From Takakia lepidozioides (taxonomy: Eukaryota; Plantae; Bryophyta): 64,000 bases of DNA. How positions within the stretch are numbered: position 1 is the first letter of the stretch; every line of letters starts with the position of its first letter. A model generated the notes under the pieces. It worked only from the letters and a program-made list of their open reading frames with translations, did not search any database and was not told where the DNA came from. A program made the translations under genes and the position numbers. The stretch is taken from assembly GCA_030704615.1 (NCBI GenBank), contig CM060734.1, positions 39,246,001 through 39,310,000 on the forward strand, given 5' to 3'. This document shows, piece after piece, positions 1-43,883 of the stretch.

Positions 1-96
1 AAACCTTGGGTGGCAGCGGAATTCGACCCCATGTCCAATTACGTACTGGATAGGAAGTTTTGGCTAGAGATAGAGACATATTTTTCTTCAACCCAT

Positions 97-383
97 AGTG
101 TTTTATTTTTCATATTTCCAAAATCGCTGGCACGGCCACCTGTGAATTCCACCCCAGTGCCTATGTGGCGAGAATATCGAGGTGACAAAGTTAGAAAAGT
201 GGCTATATTCCAGGTTTCACGTTTTCATTGGTCCACGTCTGCAAGATAAGGCTCCTGCAATTTATCTCCAGGTGCTTTTTGGCGAAAATCTCGGATTTTA
301 CCCCCCATAATTCCTTTGTACAAGTAGCTGAGCAAGTTTCCAGGTCCAAATCTGGCGATTTTTCGCCAGAAAGAAAAACAGTA
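97..383. mobile_element. Possible short non-autonomous TIR element (MITE-like)
   Basis: Imperfect inverted ends TAGTGTTTTATTT (from ~97) and AAAGAAAAACAGTA (to ~383). The right end (TTTTACCCC..AATTCCTTTGTA..TGGCGATTTTTTCGCCAGAAAGAAAAACAG) resembles ~31110-31197, suggesting a dispersed repeat. No TSD identified. Confidence 0.3.
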
Positions 384-2739
384 GGCTACCTACTCATAAT
401 TTCCTTTACTGTATGTGGGACACTGACTGTGAGACATAAGAGGTAATATCTTCCAGAATATGTTTGAGTATATTATTTGAACAGCCAACTGGACATCCTT
501 TTTGGTAGGAAATCAGAAGGCTAAAAAAAAAAGCAAAAAAATAAAAAAAGGCTGGAGTGCACTTTTTCGAACTCATAAGAGCTTCACCGCGGGATCTATT
601 GACTTTTTCGAAAAAAATGACCCCCGCCTAGTAGAAACCCCCTCATTTTGATGATTCAACCCGACTATACCCAGCCACCTATCCCCGCACGCCCTGTCCA
701 AATTTGGGGCCCAGCAGACCTGCAAAAACAGGGCTACCGTCTGGGGCCCTATTTTTGGCATTTTTCAAAAATAAACTAGAAAATTACAAGATTTTGTAGA
801 ATTTGGATGTCGGGTGGAAATCTATTGGGCCGACTGGCCTCCCAGAAGTGAGGGGATAACTTAGTGCCGGGGCTGCCCAGCCTCGCGCCTGCCCGCTCCG
901 CCACTGTCCTCTATGCCACGTTGGCGCACCAGCCACCGTCCTCATGCCCGCCCATCCACACCCCTTGCCCGAAGGTGGGCAGTGTCGCTACTCTCCAACA
1001 TACACTCAAAAGTGTGTGGCGAAAAACAAGTTGAACCGTACACTTTTAGAGAGGCTATCACATCTCAAAGTCCCTAGACGACGAATTGTTAATGGTTTTT
1101 GTACGGATTCCATTAGGCCATATATTCGTGTCAATTCTATTGGCTTTGAGATGTGAAAGCCGCTCAACCATTATGATAACACAAATAGCACATCTCTTTT
1201 GTGTTTGACAACAATGTGCTAAAATACCACATAATGTGTGTGTGTGACGTATTCCGTGCCATTTTCGCACTTAAACAATGTGCGATGATACCAGCACGAC
1301 ATTAGTATTCAATTAGCACCTAGGGATTTAGTGTTACTTTCACACAAAATCGGTGCCCCACACTGCAGCCGTATTTTGTACTAAAATATTTCGCACAGAA
1401 TCAATGCAATCACTTTGGTTGGCGCAAGTCGTACAACCAATATAACTCGCAGCTGAAAGCTCAAAATGCTCGGAAAACTCAAACAATGAGCTGCAGTGAT
1501 AGCAAATCAGCTTCCTAAACCAAACCAAATAGCTTGGCTTCAAAAGAACCAAATATATAGACTAAAACCCACTTGTTCAAGGAAATAAGTTACAAGGTGA
1601 CTTCCTTCCTCTTACAGAGATTTGTACGGTTTTCGCAGTTGACAGATTGGCAATATAGTGAAAAAAATGCCAAAATGGTCGGAGCTATCTGGGTGAGGAC
1701 CGCAAAAGCTCAAAAAGCCTCTCCACATGTTAGTACAAGACATAATTCAAGTGAAAGCAACATAGGCGAGATTTAGAGGTCTGAACAAGGTTTGGAATGT
1801 CAGCCTCTCTCCTAAACGTACCACCCTACTTACTCCTCACCAAAACTAGCCCTTCATTACTTGTTACTAAAAGGGTTCTTCTACGACTTATCTGACTAGA
1901 TTTGAAACTGCTCCAGAGCTATATTTGAATTAACTCTTTACACATATTTATACTTGTTGGTGTCCAGGTGTTGCTAGTACCATCTGTTGCTGCATCTGTA
2001 AATCCAAAAACAGAAGATGGTTCTCCCCCGCTTTGTGGAGTGTCGAGCCCTTATCCTCGTATGTATCGAAGGTTTAGAAGAAAGCCACACATAACCAACA
2101 TGTGTCCCGAGTAAGCCACATATTCCAAGGAACGGACTGAAGAGTGTCAAATATAGATTTGCCGTGGATTTTATTGCAAAATACTTTTCCTGATGATCCA
2201 AACATAAGGTTTTTTTCTGCCAACTCTATTCAAACAGCAGATCAACTTAGAGAAATTAAAAATTAAAGCTAATATCATGACACTATGAAGATGAGCAATA
2301 TGAAGATGGCCTGGAAAGACTGTGGAGATTGGAATGATTAGGCCAACAAGGCAGCAACAACAGCCCCAGCTTAAGAATGTGCAATATTGTGGTTTATGCT
2401 GGTGCCTAGACATTTCCGTCAAAATCAGCTTCAGTGGAATCCCTCACTTAACATTGCTAGTTGAGTAGATGCTCTGCAATTTGTACGACATTAAGCGCAG
2501 CTCTCTTGCATATTGGTCACTACATGCAAACAGATCAAAGTCCGTAGTTTTCTTTCTTGAGAAATATCGTACCGTATCCGTGTAACAGCCACAACATCCT
2601 TGGTGGATACCTGCAGAGGTGTAGGATACCTGTGATAATGAGCCCCAACCTCATCGTTGTCCCGAATGTTGTCAAGAACCACCTAACGTAACAGTACTAG
2701 GTGACACCAGTCCACACTTGTCAAGTCAATTCAAATTCT

Positions 2740-3129
2740 TCAAAATTTATATCTGTTCAGGAAAAAATGTCATCTTCCATGAAATTTGGCAATACATGGA
2801 CCACGCGAAGAGCATTTGCAATGTCAACAACAAGAAAACGGGGACCCGTATTTTGAGGAATGCCTTTGCATGCTCACATTTTCCCAACTGAACTCTACAC
2901 ACTTCAAGAGTCTATTGAACTTGTTGTAGGGTACTTCCTTGTACAATCGAATAACCGCCAAATCTCTTTGCACGGTTTTCCTGCTTATTGAATCCATGAA
3001 TGATGCTCGAAAAAGAAGTCGGAGCTGTGCATAATGAGTTATCTCCTCCCTTCCTAGATCTTCCATTTGAAGAGACACATCAATGTAGTATGGGCCTCCG
3101 TTAAAGTCGTGTGAAGCTCTCGCATACAA
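2740..3129 (-). pseudogene. C-terminal fragment of a Plavaka/CACTA-related transposase-like protein, frameshifted
   Basis: Minus-strand peptides YARASHDFNGGPYYIDV...HYAQLRLLF...DLAVIRLY, then after a frameshift RFLVVDIANALRVVHVLPNFMEDDIF(F)LNRYKF*. This resembles the RA..F.G.P..DV / LLF / LA.V..Y / R.VH..P.F / F.LN.Y pattern I associate with Plavaka-type transposase C-termini. At least two frameshifts. Confidence 0.45.
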
Positions 3130-3625
3130 TGGCCAGTCCCCAAAACGATCTCCAAGGCCTGCAGGGTTTCTGTGGGGAGTTCACACAAGTTCTAGTGATA
3201 TGTACCTCGGTTGAAGCTAAGCTATGGCGCGAAGTTGCAATCCAGAAGTCGACACCCGAAACCCTAAACCCTGGCAATTTTATGGATGAAAGTTTTATCA
3301 TCTCAAGTTGAAACTATATTGTGGAGAATGCAACCTTTGAGCTCATACTGTCTTCTCATTCGTATTAATAGGATAAGAAGCTTACAACAAATTCAGTTCT
3401 CCAAACACTCGAGATGATAGGCACAAGCATGTTCCAAGCACCAAATAGTAGAGTGACCAGGGGTGTAGTGAGTGGATCCGCTAGACAACGGGTCATAATT
3501 GCTCCAAGTGATCTGCGCCTTGGTAATGCAATGATGTCGGATCCTCATAGCATGTTGACGGAGTTCATGAGAATCAAGGTGCAGGTTATCTCGTAATTAT
3601 TCGATTTTATTTTAAATAGAATTTT

Positions 3626-4367
3626 ATGGATCTGTTTGATCTGTTTGATATTATGCCTAATACTCGGGTCCAAACTCCGGCCACGACCATTTCCATTGTA
3701 GTTTTCATTTGCAGTCCCTGTTTTGTTCCTTCATGTGCCGGACTTCCTTTAATATTTCCATGTCTCACCCCTACCTTGCATCTTTGCCAAACAAGGATGT
3801 TTGAGGCAATCTGCCTGAGGAGGATTTGCACCTCCAAAACACCATCCTTCGTTCGCAGCTTTGAAATTTCCGACCAGGGGTGTTTTATCAACCCCCCATA
3901 TGAACCGCATGTGGATGACATGCTCTACAATTTCATGCACTCCAGTCAGACAACCAAAAGACTAGATGGGTTTCCGTGGAGAGGTGCAAGGGAGAGAACC
4001 CCAACGTTCATGCAGACGTTACTGGAGTCATGTAGCCACCATTCTGCAAGGGTGGTCGACCTCACACTATCCACAGGTTCGTTGGTTCAATATTGTTCCC
4101 ATTTTCGAGGTCTTCCAGTTTGCATCCGAATTTACATCCTCTACAATCTTCTTGAGGCTTTTTGTCTTGGCAGGTGCGACTTACCGTGCTTGCAAGGTTG
4201 GCGGGAGAAGCCTTTTTGGCATGGAGGGCGACACCGAACTATTCAAGAGTGTCCTCCTCCCTCTTGTGTCTGGCTCTACGTTTGGCACACAGACTGGACA
4301 ATTTCAAATCAGAAATGATGATGATACCGAGGATAAGCAGATCGACAACGACTGTTTATGTGAGTAA
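3626..4367 (+). CDS. N4/N6 (amino) DNA methyltransferase-like gene, 3' portion, spliced (intron 4077-4173); 5' end undefined, possibly a pseudogene
   Basis: Removing the GT..AG intron 4077-4173 joins two ORFs in frame: NPPY(3890-3901)...PWRGARERTPTFMQTLLESCSHHSARVVDLTLSTG-ATYRACKVGGRSLFGMEGDTELF. This mirrors the beta-class N6_N4_Mtase C-terminal pattern KP..L...LI...S..GD.VLDPF.GSGTT..A....GR...G.E.D. A further possible intron 4364-4461 leads to an exon with a stop at 4481. Confidence 0.55.
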
Positions 4368-4829
4368 GTCGGCCATGGAATTGTCATTCCAGTTTGGGTA
4401 TTTGTTCAATTTCGCAGACATCAAATTTACAGTAATAATTTTATCATGTTGTGACTTGCAGGAACGGCAGTGATGGATCTTAAGGAGAAACCCCCATTTG
4501 TGCCGAGACTGTTTTCGACAGTCCCCTTTCCACTTTTGTGCTTCCTGTCTATGCCGAAGCAATGGCACTTCAAATGGCCGAGGCTCTATCCCCTGACTTC
4601 TTATTGCCCGATCGCAGGAGTAGCCATCATAGATCCGGAGTTCTTAAATTCTTGGACTTGGATGCAGAGGACGTGGGGATACATTGTACTGACTCTGAGT
4701 CAATACTGAACTTCGCATTTTTAATGTTCTGTTTATATCCTATTCAAAAATGATTGAATTCCTTTGCCTCATTGCAGTTGTTCCAGCAGAAAAGAAAATG
4801 AAATAAACAATCCACTCGGATACAAATGT

Positions 4830-5065
4830 CAATCTTCATGAATCCATCCCACAAACCCGTCACACTCATGTCATATCCATTGTGCATTCATCTACTGTGT
4901 ATTCATGCATCCTCCATTCAAGAATGTTTTCTATTATTCAACATCTATTGTACATTCATCCATTGTACTCTCATCCATCCCACATTCATCCATCTGTTTG
5001 CATTGTTCGCAGTCATCCATCCGTTTCTCATCTACTCTACATTCATCCATCATGTATTCATCTGT
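4830..5065. repeat. Degenerate low-complexity CATTCAT/CATCCAT minisatellite
   Basis: Many imperfect copies of (CA)TTCATCCAT are visible; overlapping ORFs are His/Ile/Ser-rich artefacts. Confidence 0.7.
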
Positions 5066-5159
5066 TGCTTTCAGGTGGGGATGACCACGTCCTTTTTATT
5101 ATTTCGTCCAACTTGTTTCCACGGTTGAGGTTGCTCTTCCGCGGAAATACACTCTGTTT

Positions 5160-6020
5160 CTTACTTGGCGCGCGTTAACGTGGCGTTTAAGCTCGATGAC
5201 GTGGAGTGAGCCCGGTGACATGGCGTTCGCTCAAGGTGACGTGACGTGAGCGCTACCGTGAGCGCTACTGCGCTCACGCCGAGGCATCCCTGCTGCTCGT
5301 GCTAGTGCTTCAAGCAAGCTACTGCGGTGCTGTCGTGGCTGCCAACGGCGCGGGTCCCTGCCGCTGCAGGGCGTCTCTCCTCCGCTCACCACGGCTCTCT
5401 CTTTCTTCAACTCGTTTTGATCCCGCCTCTGCGCGGCGTTTCTACCACACAGGGGAGAGAGAGTTCAGCCCGTGCTTAGGGCAAGAAAGTAAGAGAGAAA
5501 GTGATGGAAGAGGCGGTGCTTACCTTGGGCGTTGGAGCGGCGTTGGGGCAAACTCCTTGGGGCCTTGCGACCACCTCGGGCTCAGTACCAGATGCGTTTC
5601 TCCTCCACCCTAAACCCTACTCTCTGAACTCCCTCTCTCCCAAAGAACAAACGAAAACGGGAGGGGAATGAGGTGCTTCAAGCGCTTAATAAAAAAAAAG
5701 GCACGGCGCCTACGTGCAACGCCCGGCCGTCACACGCCTGTGCCCCACCTTTTTTTTGAAATGTACAAATGGTATTCGAGACGGCGGGCCGTCGCTGCTT
5801 GCGACCCCCGGCCCCACAAATACAAAAAGCACGCCACCTCTCGCGACGGTTTTTCGTCGCTGAGTGCGACCCCCGGTGTAAAAAATTGAAAAAATGCATC
5901 GCCAAATGCGACGCAAGGGTGACGCAGGAGGCGACGGCCGGCCTTTTTGGGTTTAGGGTTTAGGGCCTTTTGGGGTTCTTAGTTTTTTTTTTTTTTTCCC
6001 ATATGTTACTGGGTTAGGGT
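5160..6020. promoter_or_regulatory. CpG-rich island with outward-facing telo-box-like motifs; putative promoter or transposon subterminal region
   Basis: High CpG density, repeated GACGTG/GCGAC/GTCGC motifs, AAACCCTA at ~5612 and TAGGGTTT(AGGG) at ~5954-5965. Lies directly upstream of the + strand exons at 6.1-8.0 kb. Confidence 0.4.
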
Positions 6021-6526
6021 GTTTGTTTTTCTTTATGGCGATGGGTTTTGGATTGGTGGTTTTGGTTGTGGGTCTTGGGGTTGAAAGGATAAACGGTGTA
6101 ATTAGGATTCACACACCCAAAATATGGTTCAATCTGATAAGCGCAAAGCACTGGGTCTCAATAAATTTTTCCATGGTGTGGGCATCCTGAAGATAGAACG
6201 TGAGGAAGGATTTATTGTCTTGGCCTCTCTAGCACCATAGGGATGCTCCGCCTTTGTTTACCAATTTTGAAAGCCCCGAAGCTGAGGCATAAGGTTTTTT
6301 CGCCAACGGTTTTTGAGAAATGAAAGTGCTGGTGGTGTGTGTTAATTAGGATGCGATGGTGAGGAAACATTGACTCGTCTCCCTCGAGGATGGGGAGGTA
6401 GTACCACATATCGATTGTGGCCCTAGAGCGACCGTTTTTCGTGGCGAAGAGCCACCCATTGCACCTGATCCAATACAGGCTGCCGGGCACAATCGTAGAA
6501 TAGACCGGGGCCAAATTTTAGGTGAT

Positions 6527-6751
6527 GTGGATGATGTTGACACTCCGGGATCGAGTCGGGCGCGCCGCGGGTTGCCCTTTCGCGGGCCACCCCGTCCACC
6601 CACGTCCACCTTTGATCCCCTCGACAGGATTGAGTGTCGGTGCATTAAGTGTTGGGAACGGATACCGTCGGGCGGCACCAGACCACCGAGGCGGCGACCG
6701 CATGTTGTCAAAAAATATTACAAGAAGAACATGATTGCGGATGCGGCAAAG
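6527..6751 (+). pseudogene. Exon with CxCxxC motif resembling the CACTA transposase-associated domain
   Basis: DRIECRCIKCWERIP...RRRPHVVKKYYKKNM resembles the I.CPC..C pattern of the transposase-associated domain. Ends at a strong AAG|GTGAGT donor (6751/6752). Confidence 0.4.
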
Positions 6752-7182
6752 GTGAGTGTTTTTCCTACCCCTCTCATTAACATTCATTTAAGGTACATTT
6801 AGGTTTATCTAATAATATAGTACAATTGGTAAGCATACATGAATCCAAATTACAACATAAGTATTGATGCGTCGTTCACTACGTATATTGCAACCACGAC
6901 TTGATGCCCAAGCTCGCAATCACATTGCACATGAGACATTTCGCACCGGTCTACTTGCAGAATTTGTGCCAGAGCATGTGCCCGATGTGACCAGTTGGTT
7001 CTCCCAGCACCACGTAGATGAGATGCGTAGGGTCGATCGTGGGTGTCGTAGGCATTGTGGCCGGCGACGAGCAGGCCCCCCCCCCCCCCCTTCCTCTCTA
7101 GTTTCCTCAGGCGGTCCCCTGATCCAGTGTCCTCATCTGATGATTCTCCGCACCGTACATGCAGTAGCAGCTTGTAGGCCGA

Positions 7183-8022
7183 TTGTGCCCCCCCCCCTCC
7201 CGGTCTGTTTCTTTGTCTGATCCATCTCCAGTAGTACCTGATCCAGACGTTGTACCTCCGGCTACACCTCCGGCATTACATCCTCAACCACCTCCACTTT
7301 CATCTCCTCCGCTAGCAGTACCACCTCCACCTCTACGTGCATGTGCCCCCCGAACCCCTAGGAGGGGTCGGCTTCGCCCTAGGTTCCCCCCCCTTCGGCT
7401 TGGGCGGCCTGAGCCGGATCCTCGCCCCCGATGGGAAGTGCATAGGACTATGTTACTGAGGACCGTCCAACCTCGTTGTTGGGAGAATCATCTCGACCCT
7501 CCCACCCCCATCCGAGAGAATGTAGAGTTCAAGTATTGGGGGAGATGGTATGTTGTGAGAGCCGCTACAGACCCTGCTATGGGTCGGGGTTTATTCACGG
7601 TCAATGATATTGTGGTTCCTTCTCGGAGAAACATCATGGTGGACTTGTATCCCTATTACGGTCCATACTATACCTCCGGGGAGTTCCGTACATTACACCT
7701 CAAAGATGGTGACCCCAATATCTTCGGCAATGTTGCTAGATTGGTCAACAGTTCTTTTGGTCATCCTAGGATAACCAATGTAGTATGGGACGAGCGAAGC
7801 GATGGGCATGAGAGCTTTTGTGGTCATACGTCGGTATACTGTGAGGGGATGCACATGTTTGTGATGACATGTGCTAGTAGAACTATTAGGGCTGGCAGCG
7901 AGTTATTTGTATCATACGAGTTCTCCCGGGATGATTGGGACCTCCGATTACAGCATGAGTGGGATGTGTATGATAGAAATAGGGTTCCTTTGAGACAGGG
8001 ATCACGTAGAGGGGCATTGTAG
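7183..8022 (+). CDS. Proline-rich linker plus divergent SET-domain (lysine methyltransferase-like) protein; probably the last exon of a transposon-borne gene
   Basis: SET motifs occur in the correct order: MGRGLF (GxG), YYGP (YxG), GNVARLVNSS (GNxARFINHS-like) and RTIRAGSELFVSY (I.xGEELxxxY). No post-SET cysteines. The ORF start is GTG, so it is likely spliced to upstream exons. Confidence 0.7.
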   Translation: MCPPPSRSVSLSDPSPVVPDPDVVPPATPPALHPQPPPLSSPPLAVPPPPLRACAPRTPRRGRLRPRFPPLRLGRPEPDPRPRWEVHRTMLLRTVQPRCWENHLDPPTPIRENVEFKYWGRWYVVRAATDPAMGRGLFTVNDIVVPSRRNIMVDLYPYYGPYYTSGEFRTLHLKDGDPNIFGNVARLVNSSFGHPRITNVVWDERSDGHESFCGHTSVYCEGMHMFVMTCASRTIRAGSELFVSYEFSRDDWDLRLQHEWDVYDRNRVPLRQGSRRGAL

Positions 8023-9285
8023 ATATTCTCATGATGTACTTTGTATACATCCGATTAATCAGTTGATGTAAATATTTTTCTTGTTGCTCGTGTGGGTTAC
8101 AACTTTGCATATGTGATGTAAACATACTTATGCACATGTGGACCAAATATGAGCTTGAACCAAGTTGATTCAATGGGTCATTTCTAGTGTTGAACATAGC
8201 TACGTGTCGTAGAGACGAAAAATTGCGTTTCGCCTGCATATGATTTTTTTTTTTCCATTTTCAAGCCATATGCTTAATGATAGCATATGCAATGTGCGTG
8301 CAAAATTTGGGAGTAAACAAAGTCATTTGGACCCAGAACCATATTTTGTTCTCTCATTTGCACTCCAAAGTTGAATTATCTTCAACTTCATGCACTCTTT
8401 CAAAGAGAGTTCTGCAAAAGTGACCCTAGAATTTTTTTTATTTTTTTATTTTTTTTCCATTTTTTTTTGTCCAATTTTTTGCATGGATGTAATGGTGCAA
8501 AGCCCGATGTTCAGAACAAAATAGAGCCAAAAATAAAATCATTACGCCCCTCAAAACCGCAATCATATATTTTCTAAATGCAAAGATTTATTTCAAATTC
8601 ATTTAAATTCGTTTTAATTTAAAATTGGTGCAAGGGTGAGTGCGTTGTTGGGGAGACAAATGTTTTTTTTTTCCTGTTGGATCTTTGTACAGGTGTTGCA
8701 CACATATTTAAGCACATGTAGGAAAAAGTTAAGCGTGAGCCACATCCCTTTGATGGGTACGATGGCATGAGAGGATTTTCTTTCACATTAATAAACATAA
8801 TTTGGTTGATAGGGTGAACGCGTCCTTGGGGGGGCAAATGATTTTGTTTGGGTTTGAAACTTTGCATGTGTGACGTTGCGCACATACATGTAATTATCAA
8901 ATGACATATTTGATACATACACACATTGAAAGTTGTTGTTTGCATTTCGTTTATAATAAGTTGTATGGTTGCAAGGACACATTATAATATAGGTCCCTAT
9001 GTTCATTTGTTCGTATCAGGACTTTGTCCATCCCTTCCCAGTCATTTCTCTTGTCACCCCATCCAAAAACAACCCAAGTATATCAGGCGGGAGCCGTGGG
9101 CGAGACGCCACCCGCACGGTACCGGACAATGATGACGTCGATGACAGTGACAATGACAACAACAATGAGCATGGAATTAACCAAGAGGATGTGCAAGCCA
9201 TAGAGGATCTTTTAATGCATCATGTGGGCACTGATGCATCCCATGGAGAGGGAACCCGACCAATCGATGATCCTGAAATGGCCCC

Positions 9286-9735
9286 CTCAAATGACATGGA
9301 GAGGGAGGCGAGAATTCCCTTGTACGAAGAGGCGAAAGTGAGTCAACTTTCAACAATCTTACTTTTGCTCTGGCATAAGTAATGTTGGGATGTCTGCCAT
9401 AATGCGAACTATTGCGGACTATATCCTTGCTCCACACTTGACTTCTGATCTCTGGCGCAATTCGGATGCAAGATTGATGAGTGACATAATCATGGAGTAA
9501 GACGTGTAATTCATTTTGTAGTATAATTTGCATATTGGTGGAACATTGAAACAATGATGTGAATGTCTTATAGGGAAAAAACAAGTGGCAAACATGGAAC
9601 TTGCAACCTTTTGTTGATGAACTTAAGGAGCTATGGAGGGGGGTCCCGACATTAGATACTTCATTAGACCCTATGGCCGGACAATCTTTTCAGATGAGAG
9701 ACATCTTGCTTTGGACAATGCATGATTATCCAAGT
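9286..9735 (+). mobile_element. CACTA/EnSpm Tnp2 (TnpD-like) transposase fragments, internally deleted
   Basis: EARIPLYEEAKVSQLSTILLLL (~9305-9370) matches the N-terminal PLY.G...S.LS pattern. LQPFVDELKELWRGVPTLD...FQMRDILLWTMHDYPS (9601-9735) matches the Tnp2 core LQPL.EEL..LW.GV..D...F.MRA.LLWTI.DYP. Confidence 0.8.
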
Positions 9736-9775
9736 ATATTATGTTTCCCATGAACAATCCGTGTACATTCACTTG

Positions 9776-10042
9776 TCAATGCCGGATAATATCGATGAGG
9801 ATTGGGATTGATTGAAGTAGCGGCGACAGTCTTGTGCACCGTAGTGGGGTAGATGACAAATGTGCAAGGTCCAGAAACTCCAAGACTCCAAGCCGAGGCA
9901 CCACAAACGGTCTGTCAGGAACTTGAAGTGTCACATTCCTGAAACGAAATTTCTCCTTAAACAGTTCACCGCCGGTTGGGGGTGGCCGGTAGCAGAGGAG
10001 TCCGTTGACACTCAAAATTAACAACATCCGTTTCCTCTTCCC
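9776..10042 (-). pseudogene. FCP1/SCP-like (NIF, HAD-fold) phosphatase-homology fragment
   Basis: KRKRMLLILSVNGLLCYR...FVVPRLGVLEFLD corresponds to NIF-domain KKLLVLD(L/V)NGLL...RP...EFL. The catalytic Asp position is Ser, and the match breaks off after EFLD. Confidence 0.5.
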
Positions 10043-11240
10043 CGTTGTTGCATGTAAAGGATGAGAGACAAAGTTATCATGAGCAAGTTAATCACCGTGC
10101 ACACTGACATTAGTGTTTCTGCTATGAATATACCCATGACCTAGAATGATTGAGTGTATCGAGGATCAACACGATTGTGTAAAAAATGAAAAAATCCGGC
10201 ACATGTTGTGGGCTTGGAATGTTTCAAGAGGAGGGTTAATATTGCTAAGAAGATAAACGTCGACTGTCAAGTGGAGGTTCATGAAAGTACCTTGTACGGA
10301 GGCAAATTGATGAAGGTATCGTGCTGCATCCCCGCCTGTTGAGAAAAGATGGAGTTAATTAGTGTAGAACCAAACGAACAGAAAAAAGATGAAAGTGGAG
10401 AAATGATATCGAACAATACCGATGTCGCCTTATGGAGAATCTCGCTGGAGGACTTGGGATCCTAACGGACTTGTTTTGACGAAACCCCGATATGTCCGAG
10501 GTATTCATTTTCTTCCTCGAGTCTGCTCTGTCTCTAAAGACATACTTCTCTCCTGTGGAACCGATTTGTAGAAGAGATGGAAATGGTTTGGGGGCTCTAT
10601 TCCGCTTCCTCGATGCAGAACATAACGCCAACACTGTTGGGTTGGGAAGCCGATAAGTTGCAATTGTTTCGTCCTTGTCCTCGACCAAAAGGTTGCGGAA
10701 AAGGGGAACGGAATGGAAATTGTCCCTTGAGCACTCCACATCCTGAATGGAATTCACACGTAACGAAGGGATTACCTTGAAACAGATTTCCAATGAAGAC
10801 GTCGTTTGACAGAAAGGTTACAATCCCCAGATTTTTGGCCTGGAGTAAGACAAAAACATCAAACCCAGTACTAAGGAAAACAAAAAGACGAGTAAGAATT
10901 AAGATATAAGTAATTTTACCTGACTCCTTCTGATTTGGGTTGTCCAACCCTCGTGCTAGGGAGAGAAGGAGGGAAGAGAGGCAACAATGTGTTTGGGAGC
11001 CATAGCCTCAGCCGCATCCTCAATGGCTGACATTCTTGAGGTAGATTTCAGACCTTTGACACTTAAAAAAGATGGTGAGGAGAAATTATAGAGTGGTGTC
11101 CACGAAATCCCCTGCACATTTGTCAGTTTGGTTTCCACCTCTGACATTCAATCCTAAGCAATCTTTGCAACAGAACATCCTTTTCAGGAATGGACTGAAC
11201 AAGAGGGTCGTGCAATTGAAGGTCCCGCAGCATTTATGTT

Positions 11241-11648
11241 GAAGACCAGACTAAAAACCTAGAAACTGCAACGGTGTGGACAGATCAACACGATAGTTTG
11301 TGGCCTCCATGCCTTCACCATACTGCAATGACAGTCCTAAAAAAAAGAAAACCCATCCTATTGTAGCTGGTATACATGCCCCCTTAAATATGTACTAGCC
11401 TCTGTTCACCATGCCAGACGCGTGCTTACCATGTCGGTCAACGCCATCAATTTCTGGCCATGGGTCATAAGTTCCAACGGCTTCATATTGACCAGCAAAG
11501 TACCCCTTCATCTGGAATAAATAATGAAGGATCCGAAATCCTGCAGAGTCTATGCCGAAGACCAGACTAAAAACCTCCACACTCCAAGGTGTGGACAGAT
11601 CAACACCATAGTTTGTGGCCTCTGTGCCTTCACCGTACAATGACAGTC
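11241..11648. repeat. ~95-bp imperfect direct repeat (11241-11336 and 11557-11648)
   Basis: Both copies read GAAGACCAGACTAAAAACCT...GGTGTGGACAGATCAACAC.ATAGTTTGTGGCCTC..TGCCTTCACC...CAATGACAGTC. Confidence 0.85.
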
Positions 11649-13854
11649 ATGACTTGCCTTTGTCAATAAGTTCATGCCTACAGCCAGCCGTCACAATTTC
11701 AATTAGAATACCCCAACACAATGCATGAAATCTAGCGGTAGAATGGTGACATGAGGGAACCCATTACATACTAATGATCATATTAGATATGACCCACCCC
11801 ATAACATGAGCCACTTTTGCCTAACACATATCAAATCCATGTGTGAGTTCATCTGTGCCTCACGAGGAACGATGGAAGTGGTGGTCCCCATTGCTCCAAA
11901 TAAGAACTGTTGCAGAAAGCACTCAGACATATGTGGACTATTAAAAAGTACCCTTTCATATGTGGACATGCTTCCAATAGAACCCTTTTCATATTTGGAC
12001 AGACCCTATCATATCACATACTTTCCATAGAATACCTAGGACACACCTTTGATCCATGTGCTCGACACATGCTCGGCAAATCAAAGCACACTCCCCTCAG
12101 ATGACATGTCGCACCACTCACTCTCTCAACAATAAGCCCCTTTTTTTTTGGCATGTCTTCATGCTCCGAATTGTAGGTCACTTATGTCGGAATTACAAAT
12201 TCAATGTGGTGCAAAACACTAATCATCTTTCATGTTTTGTTGCCTTTGCCATCCTTGGAAGCCTTGCCACCCTTCTTCCTTGTTTCCTTTGTGGACTTGA
12301 CAGGCTTAACATCAGTCTTACACTCCTTGGTGGATTTCTCATGAGCTTTACTCTTCTTCGGCATCATGTCAAGTTTCAGATTCTCTGGTGTCTTCACAAA
12401 ACTCTGGGTTTCATATGTCCTATATTAACTCCCTTCTACTTTGCTGGGGATGGTGTCTCTGGCTCACCATCGCTGCGAAGGTGTGGTTTGTGCGCCTTAG
12501 CCTTTGCAGTCAATTTGCGTTTGCGCTCACCAGTTCGGGGAAGAGCTTTCTTCTTAGGTATTGGTGAACGCTCATCAAATTTTCAGTTAGAAGTATCACC
12601 TTCACTACTATTGTCATCCTCTGCATTTTCAGTATCCCCATCCCTAGTTGAACTCTCATCCTCTTCATCTTTGTCATATACATGTTTGAACTGAGCAGGT
12701 GGTGATTCGGACTCTTCGGAGGAGTCAGAGCCACGATCGGATTTCAAGGCATCATCAGTATAATATTCCAGATCAACAACTGGAGTAATCTTCATCTTCT
12801 TCTTTCTCATAGGGCCCACCCCTGAAAAGGGGCAGTAGTTGCAAGGCGAAGTGACTCTTAGTTATGCTGGCTTTGGCCGGAGTCATCTCTCTCTCTTCTT
12901 CGTGAACGCCAGCACTTTTTCCCTTGATTTTGGTTTTGGACGATGCTCATCATGACGCCTCTTCTTTGTTGAGTGTTTGGATTGTTTACTAGAAATTAGT
13001 CCTTGAATGCAGGAGAGCGACCTTGTGTCTATGTACTATGGGCTCAAACGTGGCCAAGTGGTGAAAATTATATGACCCAACGAAACTGCAGGAAAACATG
13101 TTACATATCATTTGGTGGTGTAATCTCACTTGAGATGTGAGAAAAGGTCTTTGTACAATTGGAATATTCTGTCCGTGTCTCTAATGAATGGAATCCCTTG
13201 CATGAATAGTATTATGCATGTGTGACAAGTTGCTCGGTTCGTCAGGTGGCCATAACTACTCGTCATTGTATTTGACTTTCTTTATATGTGCTTTGGGCAA
13301 GCAAACAACGCACAGTTTTGGATGCTCACTATATCTTCATATGAGTTAGATCATAGTTTCTCGTTAGTTTATAGTTCTTTGAATTTGATCCGCATACAAC
13401 ACTACTAGTTTGCTCCAAATGATTGATTTTTCGACACAATTGTGTACCTAAAGAAAACTAAAATGTCTTCACTAACATTGCGACTCGTGTGATCTATAGC
13501 ATTTCAACTTCCAAATTATGTCAATCATTTTACAACGCCGATTTGTAACTATAATCTGGCAGGGCTTGCATGTATTCCATGCATTTGTTTTCCCCCTCAA
13601 GGTCCAGTTGCTTTCCTTGGAAAAAAAAAGAAAAAAAAAAGGACCTGGATGGACCGGACCCGTGAACCCGCTAATAGTTTCCAGCAACTACCCGGATCCG
13701 ATCCGACCTCGTGTTCAAACTTCCCAAATTGTTCAAACTTCCCAAAATCAAAAACCCATATCTGGACCCGGACTTGGTTCCCAAAAAAGGACCCCATCCC
13801 CACCCCACAGGGTTCCGTAGAAAGGCACTACCTGCAGAACATTGGTCCAAAGCC

Positions 13855-14159
13855 GACAACCAACATGTAGCCTAGTGGTAATGGGCACATACCACGTTGG
13901 ATGTGGTTGTGGGTTCAAACCACGGTCTGATGTGTCATGAAGATGTCCACCTTTCAGCTAGAAGCCGGTAGCCCGTGTGGTGAAGAGACACCATAATTTA
14001 TGCTCCCTTTGGGTGGCGTTGGATGTGGTTGTGGGTTCAAACCACGATCTGATGTGTCATGAAGGTGTCCACCTTTCAGCTGGAAGGCAGTAGCCCGTGT
14101 GGTGAAGAGACACCATATTTTATGCTCCCTTCGGATGGCGTCCGTAAATAATAAATAAT
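13855..14159 (+). mobile_element. tRNA-derived SINE with a tandemly duplicated ~122-bp body
   Basis: A-box TAGCCTAGTGG (13868-13878), B-box GGTTCAAACC (~13912-13921, repeated at ~14034), near-identical units starting at 13895 and 14017, and an AAATAATAAATAAT tail. Confidence 0.7.
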
Positions 14160-14657
14160 CGTTCAAAGCCACATTGGTGTATGTTGTATGTCACCGATCT
14201 ATCAATCTGTGTGCACTTCAGATTGAAACTCCGCTCGATGTCGGAGCTAAAAGATCCGATACTAATGAGTCGATCTTCATATTAGGACTTCCGTTTCAGT
14301 AGGCGCGATATCCCGTTAGTAAACGACGGGAAGAGCGGCACGTGCCAAGCATGGAGCACGTCCAGGCGTCCAGGCCTCTTGAATGTTCACACCCTAAACC
14401 CTTTTTGCTCCCTCTCAAATTGCAGGGAGGGACGACTGTTGGACACGGATCAGACGTGTTGTGTAGGTAGAAATCTTGCATTCTGCTGTGCTGCCAGAGC
14501 AGATTTGAATGTGAAGTGTTTGCAGTATTATCAGTGTGGCCCTGTGCTGTTTTGTCGATCATACATCTTCTGGCGGGCTGTTTCTGTTGTTATTGGACAC
14601 GGGGCAGGGTCTGGTTGAGATAGTGATCTTTGTGCATTTCTGGTGGAGAGGTTCACA

Positions 14658-21566: not shown

Positions 21567-24537
21567 TCAGCATTGAGAAAAGGGACCGGGAGTTCCAGTC
21601 CACCCTTCAAGGCACCGAAGCAGAGGGGCTACAAGCTTTCCCTCCGAGATCGCATCATAAACTTTCTCAATCTCCTGACCAGGCGAGATAGTATTAGTAC
21701 CAGAAAGCAACTGGGTTCCCAGCTCGGACCGAACGAAATTGTACAGGGGGTACGATCGGCAATCATGAATGCGGTTGGGTACTGAAGAAAAGCCCTTGTC
21801 ATATGAGTCCCTGACCATTGATACTTCGATGTTCAGACGCGCCTTCAAATCCTCCTCGAAAATAGAAATTCTGTGGAACACTGAGGTGGATTGTGATTTC
21901 TCATCTTGAGGATTCTTTAGTGCATGCTCAACCATCACCTGTCTCAGCTTTTGCATCAGAGGATATGACTCGCTCGACGCGTCATCAATGTACGTAAATA
22001 CTGGCTGATGGTCTACAACTCGCAAAAGCTCCTTTTCGCAAAATCGTGCTGGTAAAAGCACACCATTACTGCCCGTGACAAGCGTCTTCTTAGTCACCTG
22101 GGCGACAATTTGCTTGACCGCTGCTTGCATTGTCTCCTCAATGTGTCGGAGGTCAACAGCTTGACATAGTCCCACCAAGAAAGTTGCACTCATAAGCTTC
22201 AATATTTCGATAGATTCCTCGGTCTTTCTGGCAGACACCAATCCCAGAGAATTCACGTCCTGATTGTGTTGCTCGGCACTTTGAACATGAGTGGTCACGG
22301 GATTGGCCAAGTAATTTAGTTCTGAGAGGTAAGAAGCCATAGCTATCTCACCTCCCTTCATTCCGTAGTCCAGACTTGGGTTGGGGCCTCCGCTCAAGTT
22401 CGAAGGCAACCCATTGTTGTAGAAGTCATTCACGAGTTCTGAAAATTGTGCAAACATGAGCTTTCCTATTGCAGCAATGGCCAAGCGCATGTTGTCCATG
22501 GAGACACCAATGGGGGTTCCTTGGAAATTACCACCGTGCAGAGCTCTGTCCCCACTAGCGTCGATAAGTGGGTTGTCGTTCACAGAGTTAATTTCCCTCT
22601 GGATAGCATGTGTTGCGTACCGAATAACCTCCACCTGCCATCGCAAAGATATCAGAAAAGAGGGCGCTGTAGAACCAAACAAATCGCTAACTACATCCGT
22701 GACAGACAATTCAGAGGGATTCGTAAAATTCTGAAAAAGAAGTGCCCATTCACGCTACAGTGATCTGTAGAATCTGGTTTCTAACAATCAATACTACCGT
22801 GATCAAACAGTAATTCCAGACGAAGTCCCATCAACGACTTCCCGGATGTTGGAAGCATGAAAGCACCTGAGGGCCCAGCCATTGCGGCGAGGTGCGCAGC
22901 GCGTAACGGTCCTGTTTGGGCTTCTTCAATGGGTCGGTCTCATGCAATTTGGCCGCAGCTCTCATGTAGGAACTGCCATCGAGAACCCATTCCATCAAGG
23001 CCGCTGCTTCCATTTGCCCAGGGTGATGTTTCAACTTGTGGGTCAATGGGTCAGCAAATTCTGGTTTCCCTTGCATTACTTCACAGAACAGTGCTGAGAG
23101 AACCTCAGCCAGTAGGACCAAAATGTTTGCATCGAAACAGACTGTTGAGGCCAGGGCGGACCCGACCGCTGTTCCATTGACCAGGGCAAGGCCCTCCTTT
23201 GGTTGCAATTCAAAGGGCTTTTCCACCCCCGCAAGCTTCAAAGCCTGGAGTGCTGACACCTCCTTGCCATCCTGCGTAAGAGCTTTGGAATTGGGCCTTG
23301 CAGTAAGAAGCCCTGCAGTAATAGTGCACATTACCAATTCAGTGAGATTGGCCACTATCGCAAACTTGTAGACCTGAGGTCAATGAATGGATTCACGGAA
23401 AGGATGATAGAGATGTCCTGAAGTTGAGAAGCCTAGATCGAACTGCCCAATACACATCATCATTCACTGCAACCATCCATCTTGATGCTGATGCAGAAAT
23501 GGTTGACCTTGAATACAATGCTCCTTGGAGAGAAATTAGTTCAAGACAGAACTACGGAAGATTGAAAGATATACATGGGCATACCAGCAATGTATGACAA
23601 TGGGACAAGGTCTCCGGATGCTGTGATAGTGCCCCGCAGAGGCAGTTTAGGAGTGATGTGGCAGTTGAGAAGCTTCTGCATTGCTTCCAAAATCTCCCAC
23701 CGGATTCCCGAATACCCCTGCAGCAAAGTGTTTGTTCGCACTAACATTGCGGCGCGGGTAGTGCATGCAGGCAATGTATTGCCGGTGCCCTTGCCGAAGA
23801 CTCCCGCATTCAGAAACCTGCAAAAGAAGCAATACTCACTTCCACACGTTCAGCACTCACATTCTTCAGTGCCGCGGGCTCCAAGTATTGTGAGAACAAG
23901 TCAGGCAGGTCCAATTACTACTGGCATCACCACTAGCGAGTATCGAGGATGAGTTAAGTTGCACACTATTGAAGAGCTCTGCCGTTCCTAAATATTTCTG
24001 GATTTGGGTTTGCCCTACACAGTACCTGATGAGCTCTCTCTGAAGCTCCACCCCTTGCTGGGTGCGGCGGTGGGAGGTGGCCCCAAAACCGGTGGTGACC
24101 CCATATATGTCTCCACCATTCATTATCTTCTGCAGAACCCAGTTGGAGCTCTCGTCCACCCCCCTCTTCGCTACGGCAGCATCCAACACCACTTTAACTT
24201 CTGGTCGTCGAGCCACTGCTGCCACTTGTGCAACTGTTAGGCTCACTCCCTCCAGCCCCACTTCAGTGGTCTCATAGAAAGTTTTCACCATCTTCTTCAC
24301 CTCCTCAAGGTGGCTGCCTTGCAATGCCGCGGCTGTCTTCCCCCAGTTGAGGGGGTCGACCAGCTGGATCGATTGCAGGGCATCGATGCACAGAGAGTCT
24401 CCATTTGAGTCGTGAATACCATTTGAATTGTGAATCCCATTTGACTCGTGTATGCCATTTGAGTTGTGAATCCCATTTGATTGGTGCATCTCACTGTCAC
24501 CATTGGCGGACAGCTTAGATCTCTTTGTCACCACCAT
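21567..24537 (-). CDS. PAL: Phenylalanine ammonia-lyase; exons 24537-24026, 23817-23585, 23312-22867, 22634-21567; 752 aa
   Basis: Exons total 2259 nt in frame with GT-AG borders. Motifs: [47 protein letters not shown] (MIO Ala-Ser-Gly), [39 protein letters not shown]. Confidence 0.98.
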
Positions 24538-37938: not shown

Positions 37939-38615
37939 TGTTATGGCACTCTGCTTAACTAGAATGGGTTTATGAGTGGAAAAGGCCACGGGGTTGGTTG
38001 ATTGACAGGCGGGAGAAGCTGGCTCAGATGCCATGTGATGGCTAGGGGCTGGCAACCGACAGGTTCAAGTGTTGGTTACCCGTCGAAGAGGTCACCTGTC
38101 TAAGAAAGAACGAAGATGATGATCAACCAAACATGAAGGACATAGGGATCTGAGGGGCTCTGCAGGAAGGATGAATGAGTACTGATATGTGTAGGGATAA
38201 TGAATGCACGGTGCGGTGGTTGGGAGGTCCGGGTGTGGCACCCCGGAACTGTGCATAGCTTCTATAAATAGAGTTCCGCATGTTGTTTGAACTAGTTGGC
38301 AGAAAGATATCTTTGGTTATTGTCAGAAACCAGAAGTGGTGATACCATCTATTTGTACATAGAATTGTAAAGGTGTGAATAGACTTCTACTGATCCCTGT
38401 CACAGTTTTGAGAAAGGGATAGAGTTGCTTTAAGGTTTGTGAATAATCTTCCGTGAAGATAAGGGCTAAACGATCGCTGAACTGGAACTGAACTCTGTCA
38501 CGATCTGAAATTAGACTCTTTTCATGTGAATAAGGTTTCATTGAGAGCAAAGTGGTGAAGGTACTGGTTGGAACTGATTCCTGTGACAGTCTGAAAGGAA
38601 GACAAAGTTGTTTTA
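37939..38615 (+). repeat. 5' LTR of the gypsy element
   Basis: Begins TGTTATGGCACTCTGC and ends GTTGTTTTA. Highly similar to 43230-43883. Followed by PBS TGGTAGCAGAGCC (38618-38630), one mismatch from the tRNA-iMet PBS. Confidence 0.92.
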
Positions 38616-38783
38616 AATGGTAGCAGAGCCGGGTTGGGTTGAGAGATAGGGGCAGGAACGAGTTCAATTACGACTCATGAACCGCCTATCGTTAGGGTCA
38701 GAGAGCATCGTACAATAAAGCTCTTACGGAAGTTCTACGATGGAGCGTTCGGATGCTGGAAATTCTCAACGTAAAGAAATCAG

Positions 38784-41700
38784 TTGAATCGACCCTTCTC
38801 AAATGCACAGATGGAGGCTTTAGGCGCTCTGATTCGTTCTGAGGTTCAAAAGTTAGCACCAGTAAAAGAGCAATCTACTACAAAGAGGACTAGAGGAACC
38901 TTGTTTGATGAATCACAAGCCGAATCCCAATCTAATGCAAGCTCCATGGAATTTAAGACAAGAAGGAGCAAGGATGTGACTCGTGAGTTCGTGGGTAAGA
39001 CTTCTGTCAAGCTAGAAGAGATCCTGTCGTTCTTAGAAACACTTGAGGAATTTTTTGAGGACGATTACCCTAAAGAAACAAAAATTAGAATGGCAACCCT
39101 ACAACTTCGAGATGCAGCAAAATTGTGGTGGTCTCGTCAGAAAAAAGAACACTGTGAACATGGCAAACACCCAATCAACACTTGGGAGAAGTTTCGATCA
39201 GTGTTTCTGGCCCACTATCTCCCTGGAGATTACGCTCATAAGATGAAGGTTGAACTCTTCACCCTGAAACAGGAAAGTTCTAATGTGGTTGAGTTCAAGA
39301 CCAAATTCGAAATGCATGCCAACTATTTTCCAACTCTCAGTGAGGATGACAGGGTGGATTTTTTTGTGGATGGCCTGAATGACTCTTTGAAATATAAGGT
39401 CAAAGCCCACAATCCCTGCACAAAAGTTGAGGCTTATAGATTAGCTTGCAATTTTGAATGTGAAGCTAAGGCACACTGAGTGGCATACTCGGCTCGTGCA
39501 AGGGAGAATAAGAAGAGGATGCCATTCTCTCCCAAGATCACCCCAACAAGAAAGGGAAATTGGAAGAGGTTTAAACCCTACAAGAAGAACGAAAATCAGG
39601 GAAGCCGGAGAACAATTGTTGGTAATCCACCGCGTCTAAGTCCCAGGGAACAAGAAGAACATCTCAGGAAGGGGCTTTGCTTCAATTGTCATAAGCCCGG
39701 CCATCGATCAGCAAATTGTCCTGAACGCCAATTCCGACTGCAGCTTTGGTAGTGGAAGAAACAGTAGAGCCTGTAACTATTACAGACCTCGGAAATTGTT
39801 CAGGATCTGCCACTGGAAAGGGTCCCAACATGAGGGTGTTAGCTGTAGTTGTCGATGGTGGAGTGGCCTACAACCCCAATGTTATTCGAGTTCAGGGACA
39901 GGTGGCGGGGAAACCAACAATGTTGTTGATTGACATTGGCAGCACCCACAATATGCTATCAAAGTCATTTGCAGACAAGTTGGGATTATCTCAGGAGGAG
40001 GTGCAGACATCTCAGATTATGCTACCAAATGGCGGGGTGGAGACCACACAACAACATCTTTCAGCTGTGCCAGTTGTCGTGCAAGGGTGCACACGGATGC
40101 AAATTTTGAAGTCTGGAACGACGCTTGCTACGACTGCATTCTGGGGATGCAATGGCTCGACACTGTGGATGCGGTGGTGGCTTGCAAGCGTGGGTTGGTG
40201 AGCGGTGCCTTACCCTCTGGCAAAACCTTTGAATTAAAAGGTACTCGAGCTCTCCCCAATGATACCCCGATGTCTGCTATTCAGATGAAAAGGTGTGCGC
40301 GTAAGGGAAATGGTCAGATTTTTGCCCTGAATGTGCATGAAAGTCTGTCTAGATCAGGTACTGAAAATACAGGAGTACATGTCAGAACAGAAGCAGTTCT
40401 GAATGATTATCGGGATATGTTTCCCGAGGAAATCCCTGGAATGCCTCCTATACGTGATATTGATCATGCCATCGAGTTGGTGGCTGATTCAGTACCATTT
40501 GCGCGAGCACCCTATTGGCACTCAATTGTAGAAACTGAAGAACTTGAAAAACAATTGAGCGACTTGCTTGAGAAAGGGTATATTCGGGCTAGCAAGTCCC
40601 CTTGGGGCGCTCGAGTCATGTTCAGAAAGAAAAAGGATGGTGGGTTAAGACTGTGTGTGGATTATAGATAGATGAACAAAATGACAATCAAGAATAAATA
40701 TCCACTTCCGCGCATCGATGATACTTTGATCACCTATATGCGAGTAAGGTCTTTTCCAAACTTGATCTGCGATCAGGTTCCCACCATATACGAATTAAGG
40801 ATGCAGGTATACCTAAGGTTGGATTCCAATCAAGCTTTGGCCATTATGAGTATACGGTAATGCCATTTGGACTTACCAATGCTCCGGCTACGTTCATGCA
40901 CTTGATGAATTCTCTGTTTCGAAAATACCTTGGCAAGATGGTACTTGTTTTCATGGATGATATCCTGGTATTTTTAAAAACAGAAGAAGAGCATGAACAA
41001 GAATGGTTTTGGATATCTTAAGGCAGAATCATCTATTTGCAAAGAAGAGTAAATGTGAGTTCTTTGTAGATCATATGGACTATTTGGGATTTCATATCTC
41101 AAAGGATGGAGTGTCCATTGATTCAAAGAAGATTCAGGCTGTGGCCGAATGGCCCAAACCCAAAGATAAAACAGAAGTCAGAAGCTTTGTTGGGTTTGCT
41201 AGCTTTCTACGAAAGTTTATTAAATCGTTCTCTCGCATTGCAGCCCCGATGACTGAGCTACTAAAGAACTTTACTTCTAAAGATTGGAATGAAGCTTGGA
41301 CTCCAGATTGTGATGTTAGCTTTGACAACCTAAAGTTTGCATTGACTCATGCTCTAGTCTTGAAGCTAATTGATCCTACCATGAATGAGATAGTGCTTTG
41401 CACTAATGCGAGTGATCTCGCTATTGAAGCAGTATTGATGCAGAGGGGTCAGGTTATTGCCTATGAGTCCAGAAAGCTCAGTCTAGCTGAACAGAATTAT
41501 CTTGTTCATGAAAAAGAACTTTTGGCTATAGTTCATGCACTGAAGATATGGAGGCACTACTTGCTTCCTGTGGACTTTACAATTGAAACAGATCATGAGA
41601 GTTTAAAGTATCTCAGTACACAACCCAATTTGAGTCGTCGTCAGATTCGATGGGTTGAATTCCTTCAGCAGTTTCACTTTGATCTGCGGTATGTGAAGGG

Positions 41701-43219: not shown

Positions 43220-43229
43220 TGGGGGAGTT

Positions 43230-43883
43230 TGTTATGGCACTCTGCTTAACTAGAACGGGTTTATGGGTAGTAAAGGCCACGGGGTTGGTTGATTGACAGG
43301 TGGGAGAAGCTGGCTCAGATGCCATGTGATGGCCAGGGGCTGGCAACCGATAGGTTCAAGTGTTGGTTACCCGTCGAGAGGTCACCTGTCTAAGAAAGAA
43401 CGAAGACGATGATCAACCAAACATGAAGGACATAGGGATCTGAGGGGCTCTGCAGGAAGGACGAATGAGTACTGATATGTGTAGGGATTATGAATGCACG
43501 GTGCGGTGGTTTGGAGGTCCGGGTGTGGCACCCCGGAACTGTGCATAGCTTCTGTAAATAGAGTTCAACTAGTTGGCAGAAAGATAAGAGATGATCTTTG
43601 GTTATTGTCAAGAACCAGAAGTGGTGATACCATCTGTGTGTACAGAGAATTGTAAAGGTGTGAAAAGAATTCTACTGATCCTTGTCACAGTTTTGAGTCC
43701 AGTTCAGCGATCGTTCAGCCCTTATCTTCACATAAGTGTATTCACAAACCTTAAAGCAACTCTCTCACGATCTGAAATTAGACTCTTTTCATGTGAATAA
43801 GGTTTCATTGAGAGCAAAAGTGGTGAAGGTACTGGTTGGAACTGATTCCTGTGACAGTCTGAAAGGAAGACAGAGTTGTTTTA
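43230..43883 (+). repeat. 3' LTR of the gypsy element
   Basis: Preceded by polypurine tract AGTGGGGGAG (43218-43227). Same start and end as the 5' LTR. Confidence 0.92.

Follow-up and report, generated by a model that had tools for sequence, protein, structure and literature searches.

The question raised by positions 2740-10042 of the DNA analysed here, a stretch of 64,000 nucleotides from Takakia lepidozioides (contig CM060734.1, positions 39,246,001 to 39,310,000; this whole stretch is called the window), is whether they hold one large DNA transposon equipped with several chromatin enzymes or the debris of several elements. A preliminary description had put forward a candidate large CACTA/Plavaka-type transposon, or several nested ones, bearing a DNA amino-methyltransferase-like gene, a SET-domain gene and an FCP1/NIF-like gene, that is, three potential writers of chromatin marks. 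The stretch is probably a mosaic of decayed, high-copy fragments from several transposons and not one three-writer element, with its methyltransferase-like fragment (3414-4360), a relic at its left end (2740-3180) and its NIF-like fragment (9779-10087) being pieces of other transposon genes, adjoining or nested; the claim of three writers is unsupported for this window. The core of the stretch (~6.5-9.75 kb, perhaps from ~4.8 kb) is, as judged from homology, a dead member of a CACTA/EnSpm (Tnp2) lineage that has a gene of its own, joining a CxCxxC motif to a divergent SET domain.

The SET-domain open reading frame (ORF) at 7183-8022(+) scores by itself 17.3-18.5 bits against the Pfam SET family (PF00856), under the cut-off of 22.4 bits, and searches with it of a word-indexed protein database and of PDB sequences returned nothing. 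It was through its family that this ORF, already listed as a SET gene in the preliminary description, was confirmed. Exhaustive HMMER searching of 1.84 billion representative proteins gave 34 relatives at E <= 1e-3 (97-459 residues in length, 32-48% identity), and Pfam SET is matched by 24 of the 26 aligned family sequences (best E 6.5e-9). Named members of the family include Riccia sorocarpa proteins, a transcript of Psilotum nudum and a gene model of Ginkgo biloba. Alignment of the family reveals the conserved pattern WGRxW ... GLGLFA ... LFPYxGPxY ... IDGDPxRxGNIAGYINSS ... N.EW ... MTVATRTIxAGxELFxxY, in which liverwort, fern, gymnosperm and metagenome members show hardly any variation at GxG, at the Asn of the cofactor motif or at the C-terminal Tyr of EL..Y. 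Comparison of the family profile with the PDB gave LegAS4-type SET structures as best match across the whole domain (E 1.2e-6), followed by KMT2A, EZH2, SET8 and ATXR5/6. The AlphaFold model of an intact Riccia relative possesses a mean pLDDT of 82, with its core above 90, and that of the window copy a pLDDT of 75; both models match SET-domain methyltransferases with a Foldseek probability of 1.00. Alignment, profile and models show that the window ORF belongs to a true SET family, with a predicted SET fold.

This ORF forms the last part of a three-exon gene at 6527-8022(+), in which the CxCxxC motif is followed by the divergent SET domain. The nearest relatives fetched are two metagenome contigs (L013 and L014), in which all three coding blocks of the window gene recur. 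Exon A matches exon A of these contigs with E values of 1e-6 to 2e-6, and an AG acceptor is found in phase at 7166-7167, ahead of exon C. No similarity at the DNA level was detected between the window gene and the two contigs, and exons A, B and C are conserved as protein; this therefore fits exons separated by introns. The CxCxxC motif of exon A has no Pfam match. Its conservation in these relatives confirms, at 6527-6740(+), the CxCxxC exon of the preliminary description. Among more distant members, a motif of the form R..C.C..CKG ... H...YG precedes the SET domain within one ORF or protein in Riccia locus L009 and in P0021, and in Riccia locus L011 the CxC motif is located in the ORF immediately upstream of SET.

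The gene is broken in the window. Approximately 87 nt (~29 codons) of the SET core are absent at 7705, between FRTLH and LKDGDP, where a gap occurs in the family alignment. SET relatives carry 24-35 residues at this point, and a contig of another copy (record 30, run X7) holds ~86 extra letters exactly at 7705. Given this loss within SET and the absence of most of Tnp2, the window copy of the SET-carrying CACTA element is dead and decayed.

Linkage of the SET gene to Tnp2 was found in five contexts outside the window. The first is represented by four Logan assemblies of one sample series (L001-L004), which contain SET, Transposase_21 twice and DUF4218. Three lie on three chromosomes of Riccia sorocarpa (L009, L010 and L011; assembly traced through PMC11923412), in each of which SET is followed by Tnp2, with DUF4218 also present in L010 and L011. 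The fifth is a 10-kb contig of an ENA metagenome (L017) that encodes an opposite-strand gene, CxC, SET, Tnp2, DUF4218 and DUF4216, and is collinear with the Riccia element at the protein level. In every longer context fetched, the Tnp2 genes trail SET on the same strand at a distance of ~0.2-1 kb. Loci L010 and L011, although on different chromosomes, have 10.2 kb in common at 95-98% identity. Within the latter, L011:4476-15609 (Riccia sorocarpa CM100795.1) is a complete CACTA element of 11,134 bp. It ends in CACTAC termini (CACTACTACAAAACG and, on the other strand, CACTTCTACAAATCG), is flanked by a 3-bp target duplication (TGT), and contains an opposite-strand gene, the CxC exon, SET (28 bits against Pfam), Tnp2 (E 2.6e-54), DUF4218 and DUF4216. 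The check suggested in the preliminary description, whether its cargo domains recur with transposases in a conserved order, succeeds for SET at these five sites. Comparison of the loci supports the SET gene as a true and long-standing part of a CACTA/Tnp2 lineage. Genes or fragments of a Ulp1-type protease (Peptidase_C48) were also observed near SET-Tnp2 units, at Riccia L009:16473-19973 and at L016:555-1010 on an ENA metagenome contig; this protease may be another accessory gene in some members of the family.

Two fragments of the Tnp2 transposase remain in the window element, the rest of the protein being absent. The core fragment at 9601-9753 is the only one of the tested pieces of 2740-10042 to pass a profile test alone (the Pfam cut-off for Transposase_21, PF02992, is 28.6 bits), and it was also aligned by tblastn to L001, L011 and L017. 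Upstream of it, 9290-9370(+) resembles the N-terminal region of the Riccia Tnp2 gene at L011:11803-12297 (pairwise E 7e-5). Both results uphold the plus-strand CACTA Tnp2 fragments that had been proposed. Loose contig ends occur on both sides of 9441, so a breakpoint relative to other copies is placed near this position.

Candidate termini of the window element were rejected. CACTAC at 2518, paired with TAGTG at either 9842 or 10111, showed no match past the six-base core, and the Riccia terminal repeats and sub-terminal regions, used as a guide, gave chance-level matches only. The sequence CGATTTGTAGAAGAG at 10562-10576 matches the Riccia right terminal repeat at 14 of 15 bases; it reads CTC instead of the terminal CAC, is without a partner, and probably reflects chance similarity.

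Upstream of the CxC exon, the region at 5001-6000 was correctly described as a CpG island: its observed/expected CpG ratio is 1.05-1.09, against 0.55 in the whole window, at a GC content of 0.55. It contains telobox-like (plant telomere-like) motifs, AAACCCTA at 5612 and TAGGGTTT at 5954, with another outside the island at 3259, as well as a GTGAGCGC/GCGCTCAC palindrome near 5245-5285. The island may be the promoter of the element. For the repeat array that borders and partly overlaps it (Table 1), a sub-terminal position or a role in protein binding within the element is possible.

Copy-number evidence comes from public contigs aligned to positions 3600-9599 of the window (6,000 letters). This region is a high-copy repeat, matched by 7,013 contigs of one DNA run from the same organism (X1) at 85-100% identity; 1,312 of these are at >=99%, 2,283 at 95-99%, 2,613 at 90-95% and 805 below 90%, and they cover 30 of 30 bins. 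Portions of it turned up as well in one plant metagenome run and in two runs that are probably RNA, one 912-nt contig from this material spanning the entire SET ORF unspliced. The depth of aligned contigs was dropped as a measure of copy number, since the alignment tool cautions against such use. Many contigs jump parts of the stretch (for example, from 6466 to 7272 and from 6622 to 7393), which indicates that deletion derivatives are common. Because of the contig coverage, these deletion derivatives and the fact that no host gene was seen between the pieces of 2740-10042, the stretch is multi-copy transposon debris. On this point the preliminary description was accurate, having recognised deletion-scarred transposon remains, here seen in the high copy number, the skipping contigs and the broken SET and Tnp2 genes, with no normal host gene between the pieces.

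Table 1. Position, strand and basis of recognition of the features at 2740-10042 of the window.
Feature	Positions	Strand	Basis
C-terminal coding remnant of a transposase-like gene	2740-3180	-	ORF 2827-3180 plus tail 2760-2873 in another frame
DNA amino-methyltransferase-like gene fragment	3414-4360	+	Motifs and in-frame intron read from the sequence
Array of 15/30-nt repeats (CATTCATCCATC-like)	4870-5066	.	Deepest bin of aligned contigs
CpG island upstream of CxC exon	5001-6000	.	GC 0.55, CpG observed/expected 1.05-1.09
Exon A: zinc-finger-like motif CxCxxC ... H..KYY, donor AAG/GTGAGT	6527-6740	+	Homology to exon A of L013 and L014
Exon B (ILQPRLDAQARNHIAHETFRTGLL...), ends approximate	6862-7013	+	Pairwise E 1e-7 to the matching L013 ORF; splice-site candidates
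Exon C: proline-rich linker and divergent SET domain	7168-8022 (SET core ~7516-7932)	+	Profile, alignment, model
Acidic stretch and N-terminal region of Tnp2 transposase (…PLYEEAKVSQLSTILLL)	8993-9379	+	Pairwise match to Riccia
Tnp2 core fragment, 50 residues (profile positions 92-134 of 213)	9601-9753	+	PF02992, E 1.7e-9, 37.6 bits
N-terminal part of FCP1/NIF-like domain (KRMLLILSVNGLL ... RPFVVPRLGVLEFLDL)	9779-10087	-	Atlas features

The methyltransferase-like gene consists of a possible upstream exon (3414-3582), an exon with NPPY and PTFMQTLLE that ends at 4076, a GT..AG intron in frame (4077-4173) and an exon at 4174-4360 that encodes GATYRACKVGGRSLFGMEGD, such that the motif VVDLTLSTG-GATYRACKVGGRSLFGMEGD spans the junction. 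By eye, NPPY, PTFMQTLLE and VVDLTLSTG-GATYRACKVGGRSLFGMEGD follow the motif order of beta-class amino-methyltransferases; the same reading places NPPY just ~33 residues before PTFMQTLLE and gives motif I as LSTGG against FxGxG. Searched as separate pieces, the exons and ORFs showed no match to the beta-class N4/N6 methyltransferases (PF01555) in Pfam, NCBIfam, PHROGs or PDB sequences. The ORF found nothing in the word-indexed protein database, the exons had no match in either of two metagenome scans, and a phage tblastn search with both exons returned chance-level matches to unrelated genes only. In a language-model Atlas, several small N6_N4_Mtase clusters neighbour the gene at 0.76-0.82, which is weak and serves as a lead only. 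The spliced N4/N6 methyltransferase-like gene of the preliminary description accordingly stands as far as its in-frame intron and motifs are concerned, but no profile or sequence search confirms the family. Although other genomic copies diverge after 4228, their encoded peptide stays similar (GDSDLYNTVL against GDTELFKSVLL); this suggests that the gene represents a coding family under constraint. A loose end at 4228 was considered as a junction breakpoint and rejected, since the similar peptides of the diverging copies point to subfamily divergence.

The frame at 2827-3180(-) has one database relative (P0053, 69% identity, E 4.8e-18). The JGI contig that holds it (L012:2274-2696) is 74% identical to the window over 427 nt; homology is confined to 2740-3155 of the window, the flanks differ on both sides, and the reading frame of the contig continues through the frameshift seen in the window. 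No Pfam, PHROG or NCBIfam family matches the frame, and neither the ORFs of L012 nor the frames of this piece match a Plavaka or other transposase profile in Pfam. A passage of PMC12730594 gives Plavaka termini as TGT..ACA or CATCA..TGATG, with duplications of 2-3 bp. No such termini were found in the window, and the piece, a C-terminal tail only whose core domain would lie outside the view, has no match to a Plavaka transposase domain. The label of Plavaka-like transposase C-terminus formerly given to 2827-3180(-) is not confirmed, as it was drawn from motifs only and no profile matches the frame. Identification of the tail as the DUF4216-type C-terminus of Tnp2 was also rejected, there being no similarity to the C-terminus of Riccia Tnp2. 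As judged from its homologue, 2740-3180 is the relic of the end of some conserved gene.

At the other end of the stretch, the FCP1/NIF-like piece is truncated where it abuts the Tnp2 fragment. In the Atlas, 9779-10087(-) falls among NIF (PF03031) clusters at 0.90, sharing 171 features with them (recognition 2709); according to the tool, such values mostly accompany true family membership. The piece has no match in Pfam, PHROGs, NCBIfam or the PDB, and its catalytic DxDxT is lost, the position reading SVNGL (LILSVNGLL). The FCP1/NIF-like assignment of the preliminary description is supported by the language model, but not by hidden Markov model searches or by the catalytic motif. Pfam scans of every open frame at 2500-11600 gave no further meaningful matches.

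The remainder of the window looks like a land-plant genome. A phenylalanine ammonia-lyase gene was identified at 21567-24537(-), with ~3 coding blocks and an N-terminal run of NGIH repeats, and a Ty3-type long terminal repeat (LTR) retrotransposon at 37939-43900, whose LTRs are 92-99% identical and whose gag-pol frames are broken. Further host-like ORFs are present elsewhere. A 122-nt unit is tandemly duplicated at 13895-14138 with 93% identity.

The interpretation of the stretch as a mosaic was weighed against that of a single large CACTA/Plavaka-type element bearing the methyltransferase-like, SET and FCP1/NIF-like genes, of which the window would hold a deletion-scarred copy. None of the methyltransferase-like, NIF-like and Plavaka-like pieces is matched in any fetched SET-Tnp2 locus, and no shared termini that would join the flanking pieces to the SET-Tnp2 copy were found in the window. 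Several observations weigh against the mosaic around a CACTA core, or against parts of it. No pair of inverted CACTA termini flanked by a 3-bp target duplication was found at positions 1-14500 of the window (the preliminary description had also found no element termini), Pfam gives no match of the CxC exon to the family of Tnp2 N-terminal domains, and the cofactor motif NH(S/C) reads NSS in the SET family, the usual His being Ser. Furthermore, all of 3600-9599 is multi-copy, and a contig from another sample joins 4702 to 4864, so that at least one further copy has the 3' end of the methyltransferase-like gene joined to the repeat array that precedes the SET unit. The last two points favour a single element, as do the red-algal Plavaka elements reported to carry a methylase and SET gene (bioRxiv 10.1101/2025.02.11.637652). 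The missing termini argue against a single element too, as do the failure of the methyltransferase-like and Plavaka readings in all profile searches and the composition of the complete Riccia element and the four other SET-Tnp2 contexts, which lack both the methyltransferase-like and the NIF-like domains. A single element with three writers is considered unlikely, and the mosaic remains the preferred interpretation.

For the CACTA core of this mosaic, a role of the SET gene can be proposed. The CxC exon may be the first exon of the transposase itself, with exon A joined to the SET exon in one transcript form and, by skipping that exon, to the Tnp2 exons in another. The SET exon would then be an alternative terminal exon, because it ends in a stop in every copy seen. 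In maize En/Spm, TnpA and TnpD are derived from one transcript by splicing, and the proposed sharing of a first exon by two proteins would be similar. Through the shared N-terminal motif, the SET protein might be recruited to the element or its transposase and would there methylate a lysine, in a histone or some other protein, perhaps countering host silencing. That the SET protein is a real product of the element and yet not an active methyltransferase is a fair rival to this proposal, if an improbable one; the protein could then be a module for binding or an adaptor, or could repress the element in a self-limiting way. Such inactivity would agree with the NSS motif found across the family and with the alignments, in which no post-SET cysteine cluster is visible. 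SET proteins that lack catalytic activity and yet act in chromatin have been described (for example, in PMC12886896). Activity is favoured by the near invariance of GxG, of the Asn of NxS and of the C-terminal Tyr of EL..Y across distant members, and by the closest solved relative, LegAS4, in which INFS is found at the position of the NSS-type cofactor motif. LegAS4 is taken here to be an active histone methyltransferase. Plant DNA transposons often capture fragments of host genes, and the SET, methyltransferase-like and NIF-like ORFs could have been captured at random in the manner of Pack-CACTA elements, with no role for the element; the window copies are indeed all broken. This origin is very improbable given that the position and orientation of SET beside Tnp2 and the CxC N-terminus are constant across very distant plants, that SET motifs are conserved at 29-49% identity, and that the family matches are short stand-alone proteins and not parts of a longer host SET protein.

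The complete Riccia relative resembles maize En/Spm and other plant CACTA elements in its Tnp2-type transposase (Transposase_21, DUF4218, DUF4216), its CACTA termini and 3-bp duplication, and its second gene on the opposite strand. This lineage differs from other plant CACTA elements in carrying a SET-domain exon downstream of the CxCxxC exon and ahead of the transposase body. Of solved structures, the minimal SET proteins of LegAS4/RomA type (PDB 5czy, 8sr6) are the best whole-domain profile match (E ~1e-6) and share the I-N-x-S variant, whereas they are bacterial effectors with other domains; identity is ~18-20%, and nothing points to a common target.

Precedents for transposons with SET genes occur outside the land plants. 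Giant Plavaka elements of Bostrychia moritziana (17-19 kb) have been described with the accessory genes PAG1-3, PAG2 being reported to combine an N6-adenine DNA methylase and SET in one protein, with a ParB-2OG oxygenase gene alongside (bioRxiv 10.1101/2025.02.11.637652). These resemble the present case as EnSpm-related DNA transposons with chromatin-type genes, and they show the pairing of methylase and SET that had been proposed for the window. They differ in that here SET is joined to CxC in a classical Tnp2 element and the methyltransferase-like gene is separate, with its family unconfirmed. That the CACTA lineage of this genome gathered methyltransferase-like, SET and NIF-like genes into one element, as a land-plant counterpart of the red-algal Plavaka cassette, is a speculative extension that we regard as quite doubtful. 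If true, it would imply that transposon-borne epigenetic toolkits are ancient or have been assembled repeatedly across Archaeplastida.

HarbingerS and MuDR elements of Phytophthora are reported to encode histone methyltransferases of the SET type (Repbase Reports 2014, cited by PMC12730594). They are likewise DNA transposons with a SET gene of their own, but of another transposase superfamily, host kingdom and gene arrangement. The anti-silencing protein VANC may offer a functional model for the role of SET, in that it is an element-encoded protein thought to act on the chromatin of its element; it differs from the SET protein discussed here in not being a SET protein and in causing DNA hypomethylation. 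It belongs to the VANDAL (Mutator) elements of Arabidopsis (cited in a passage of PMC12730594 and in the Bostrychia preprint).

A full-text literature search turned up no land-plant Tnp2/CACTA element described with a SET gene inside it. The assertion that no described plant element has such a combination holds for land-plant CACTA elements as far as this search goes, but has precedents in the red-algal Plavaka and Phytophthora elements. SET genes in DNA transposons of oomycetes and red algae are known; what appears to be new, as far as the search goes, is a SET gene within the transposase unit of a classical land-plant CACTA element. By homology, the SET-carrying CACTA lineage is present in at least a liverwort, this genome, one Logan sample series and one ENA metagenome, with members of the family in Psilotum and Ginkgo. 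This lineage is the part of the original proposal worth keeping, as a concrete and testable case with a complete liverwort copy, L011:4476-15609, which is a good experimental reference. Transposons with chromatin enzymes of their own are rare, and they are relevant to the question of how host silencing is escaped or shaped by mobile DNA.

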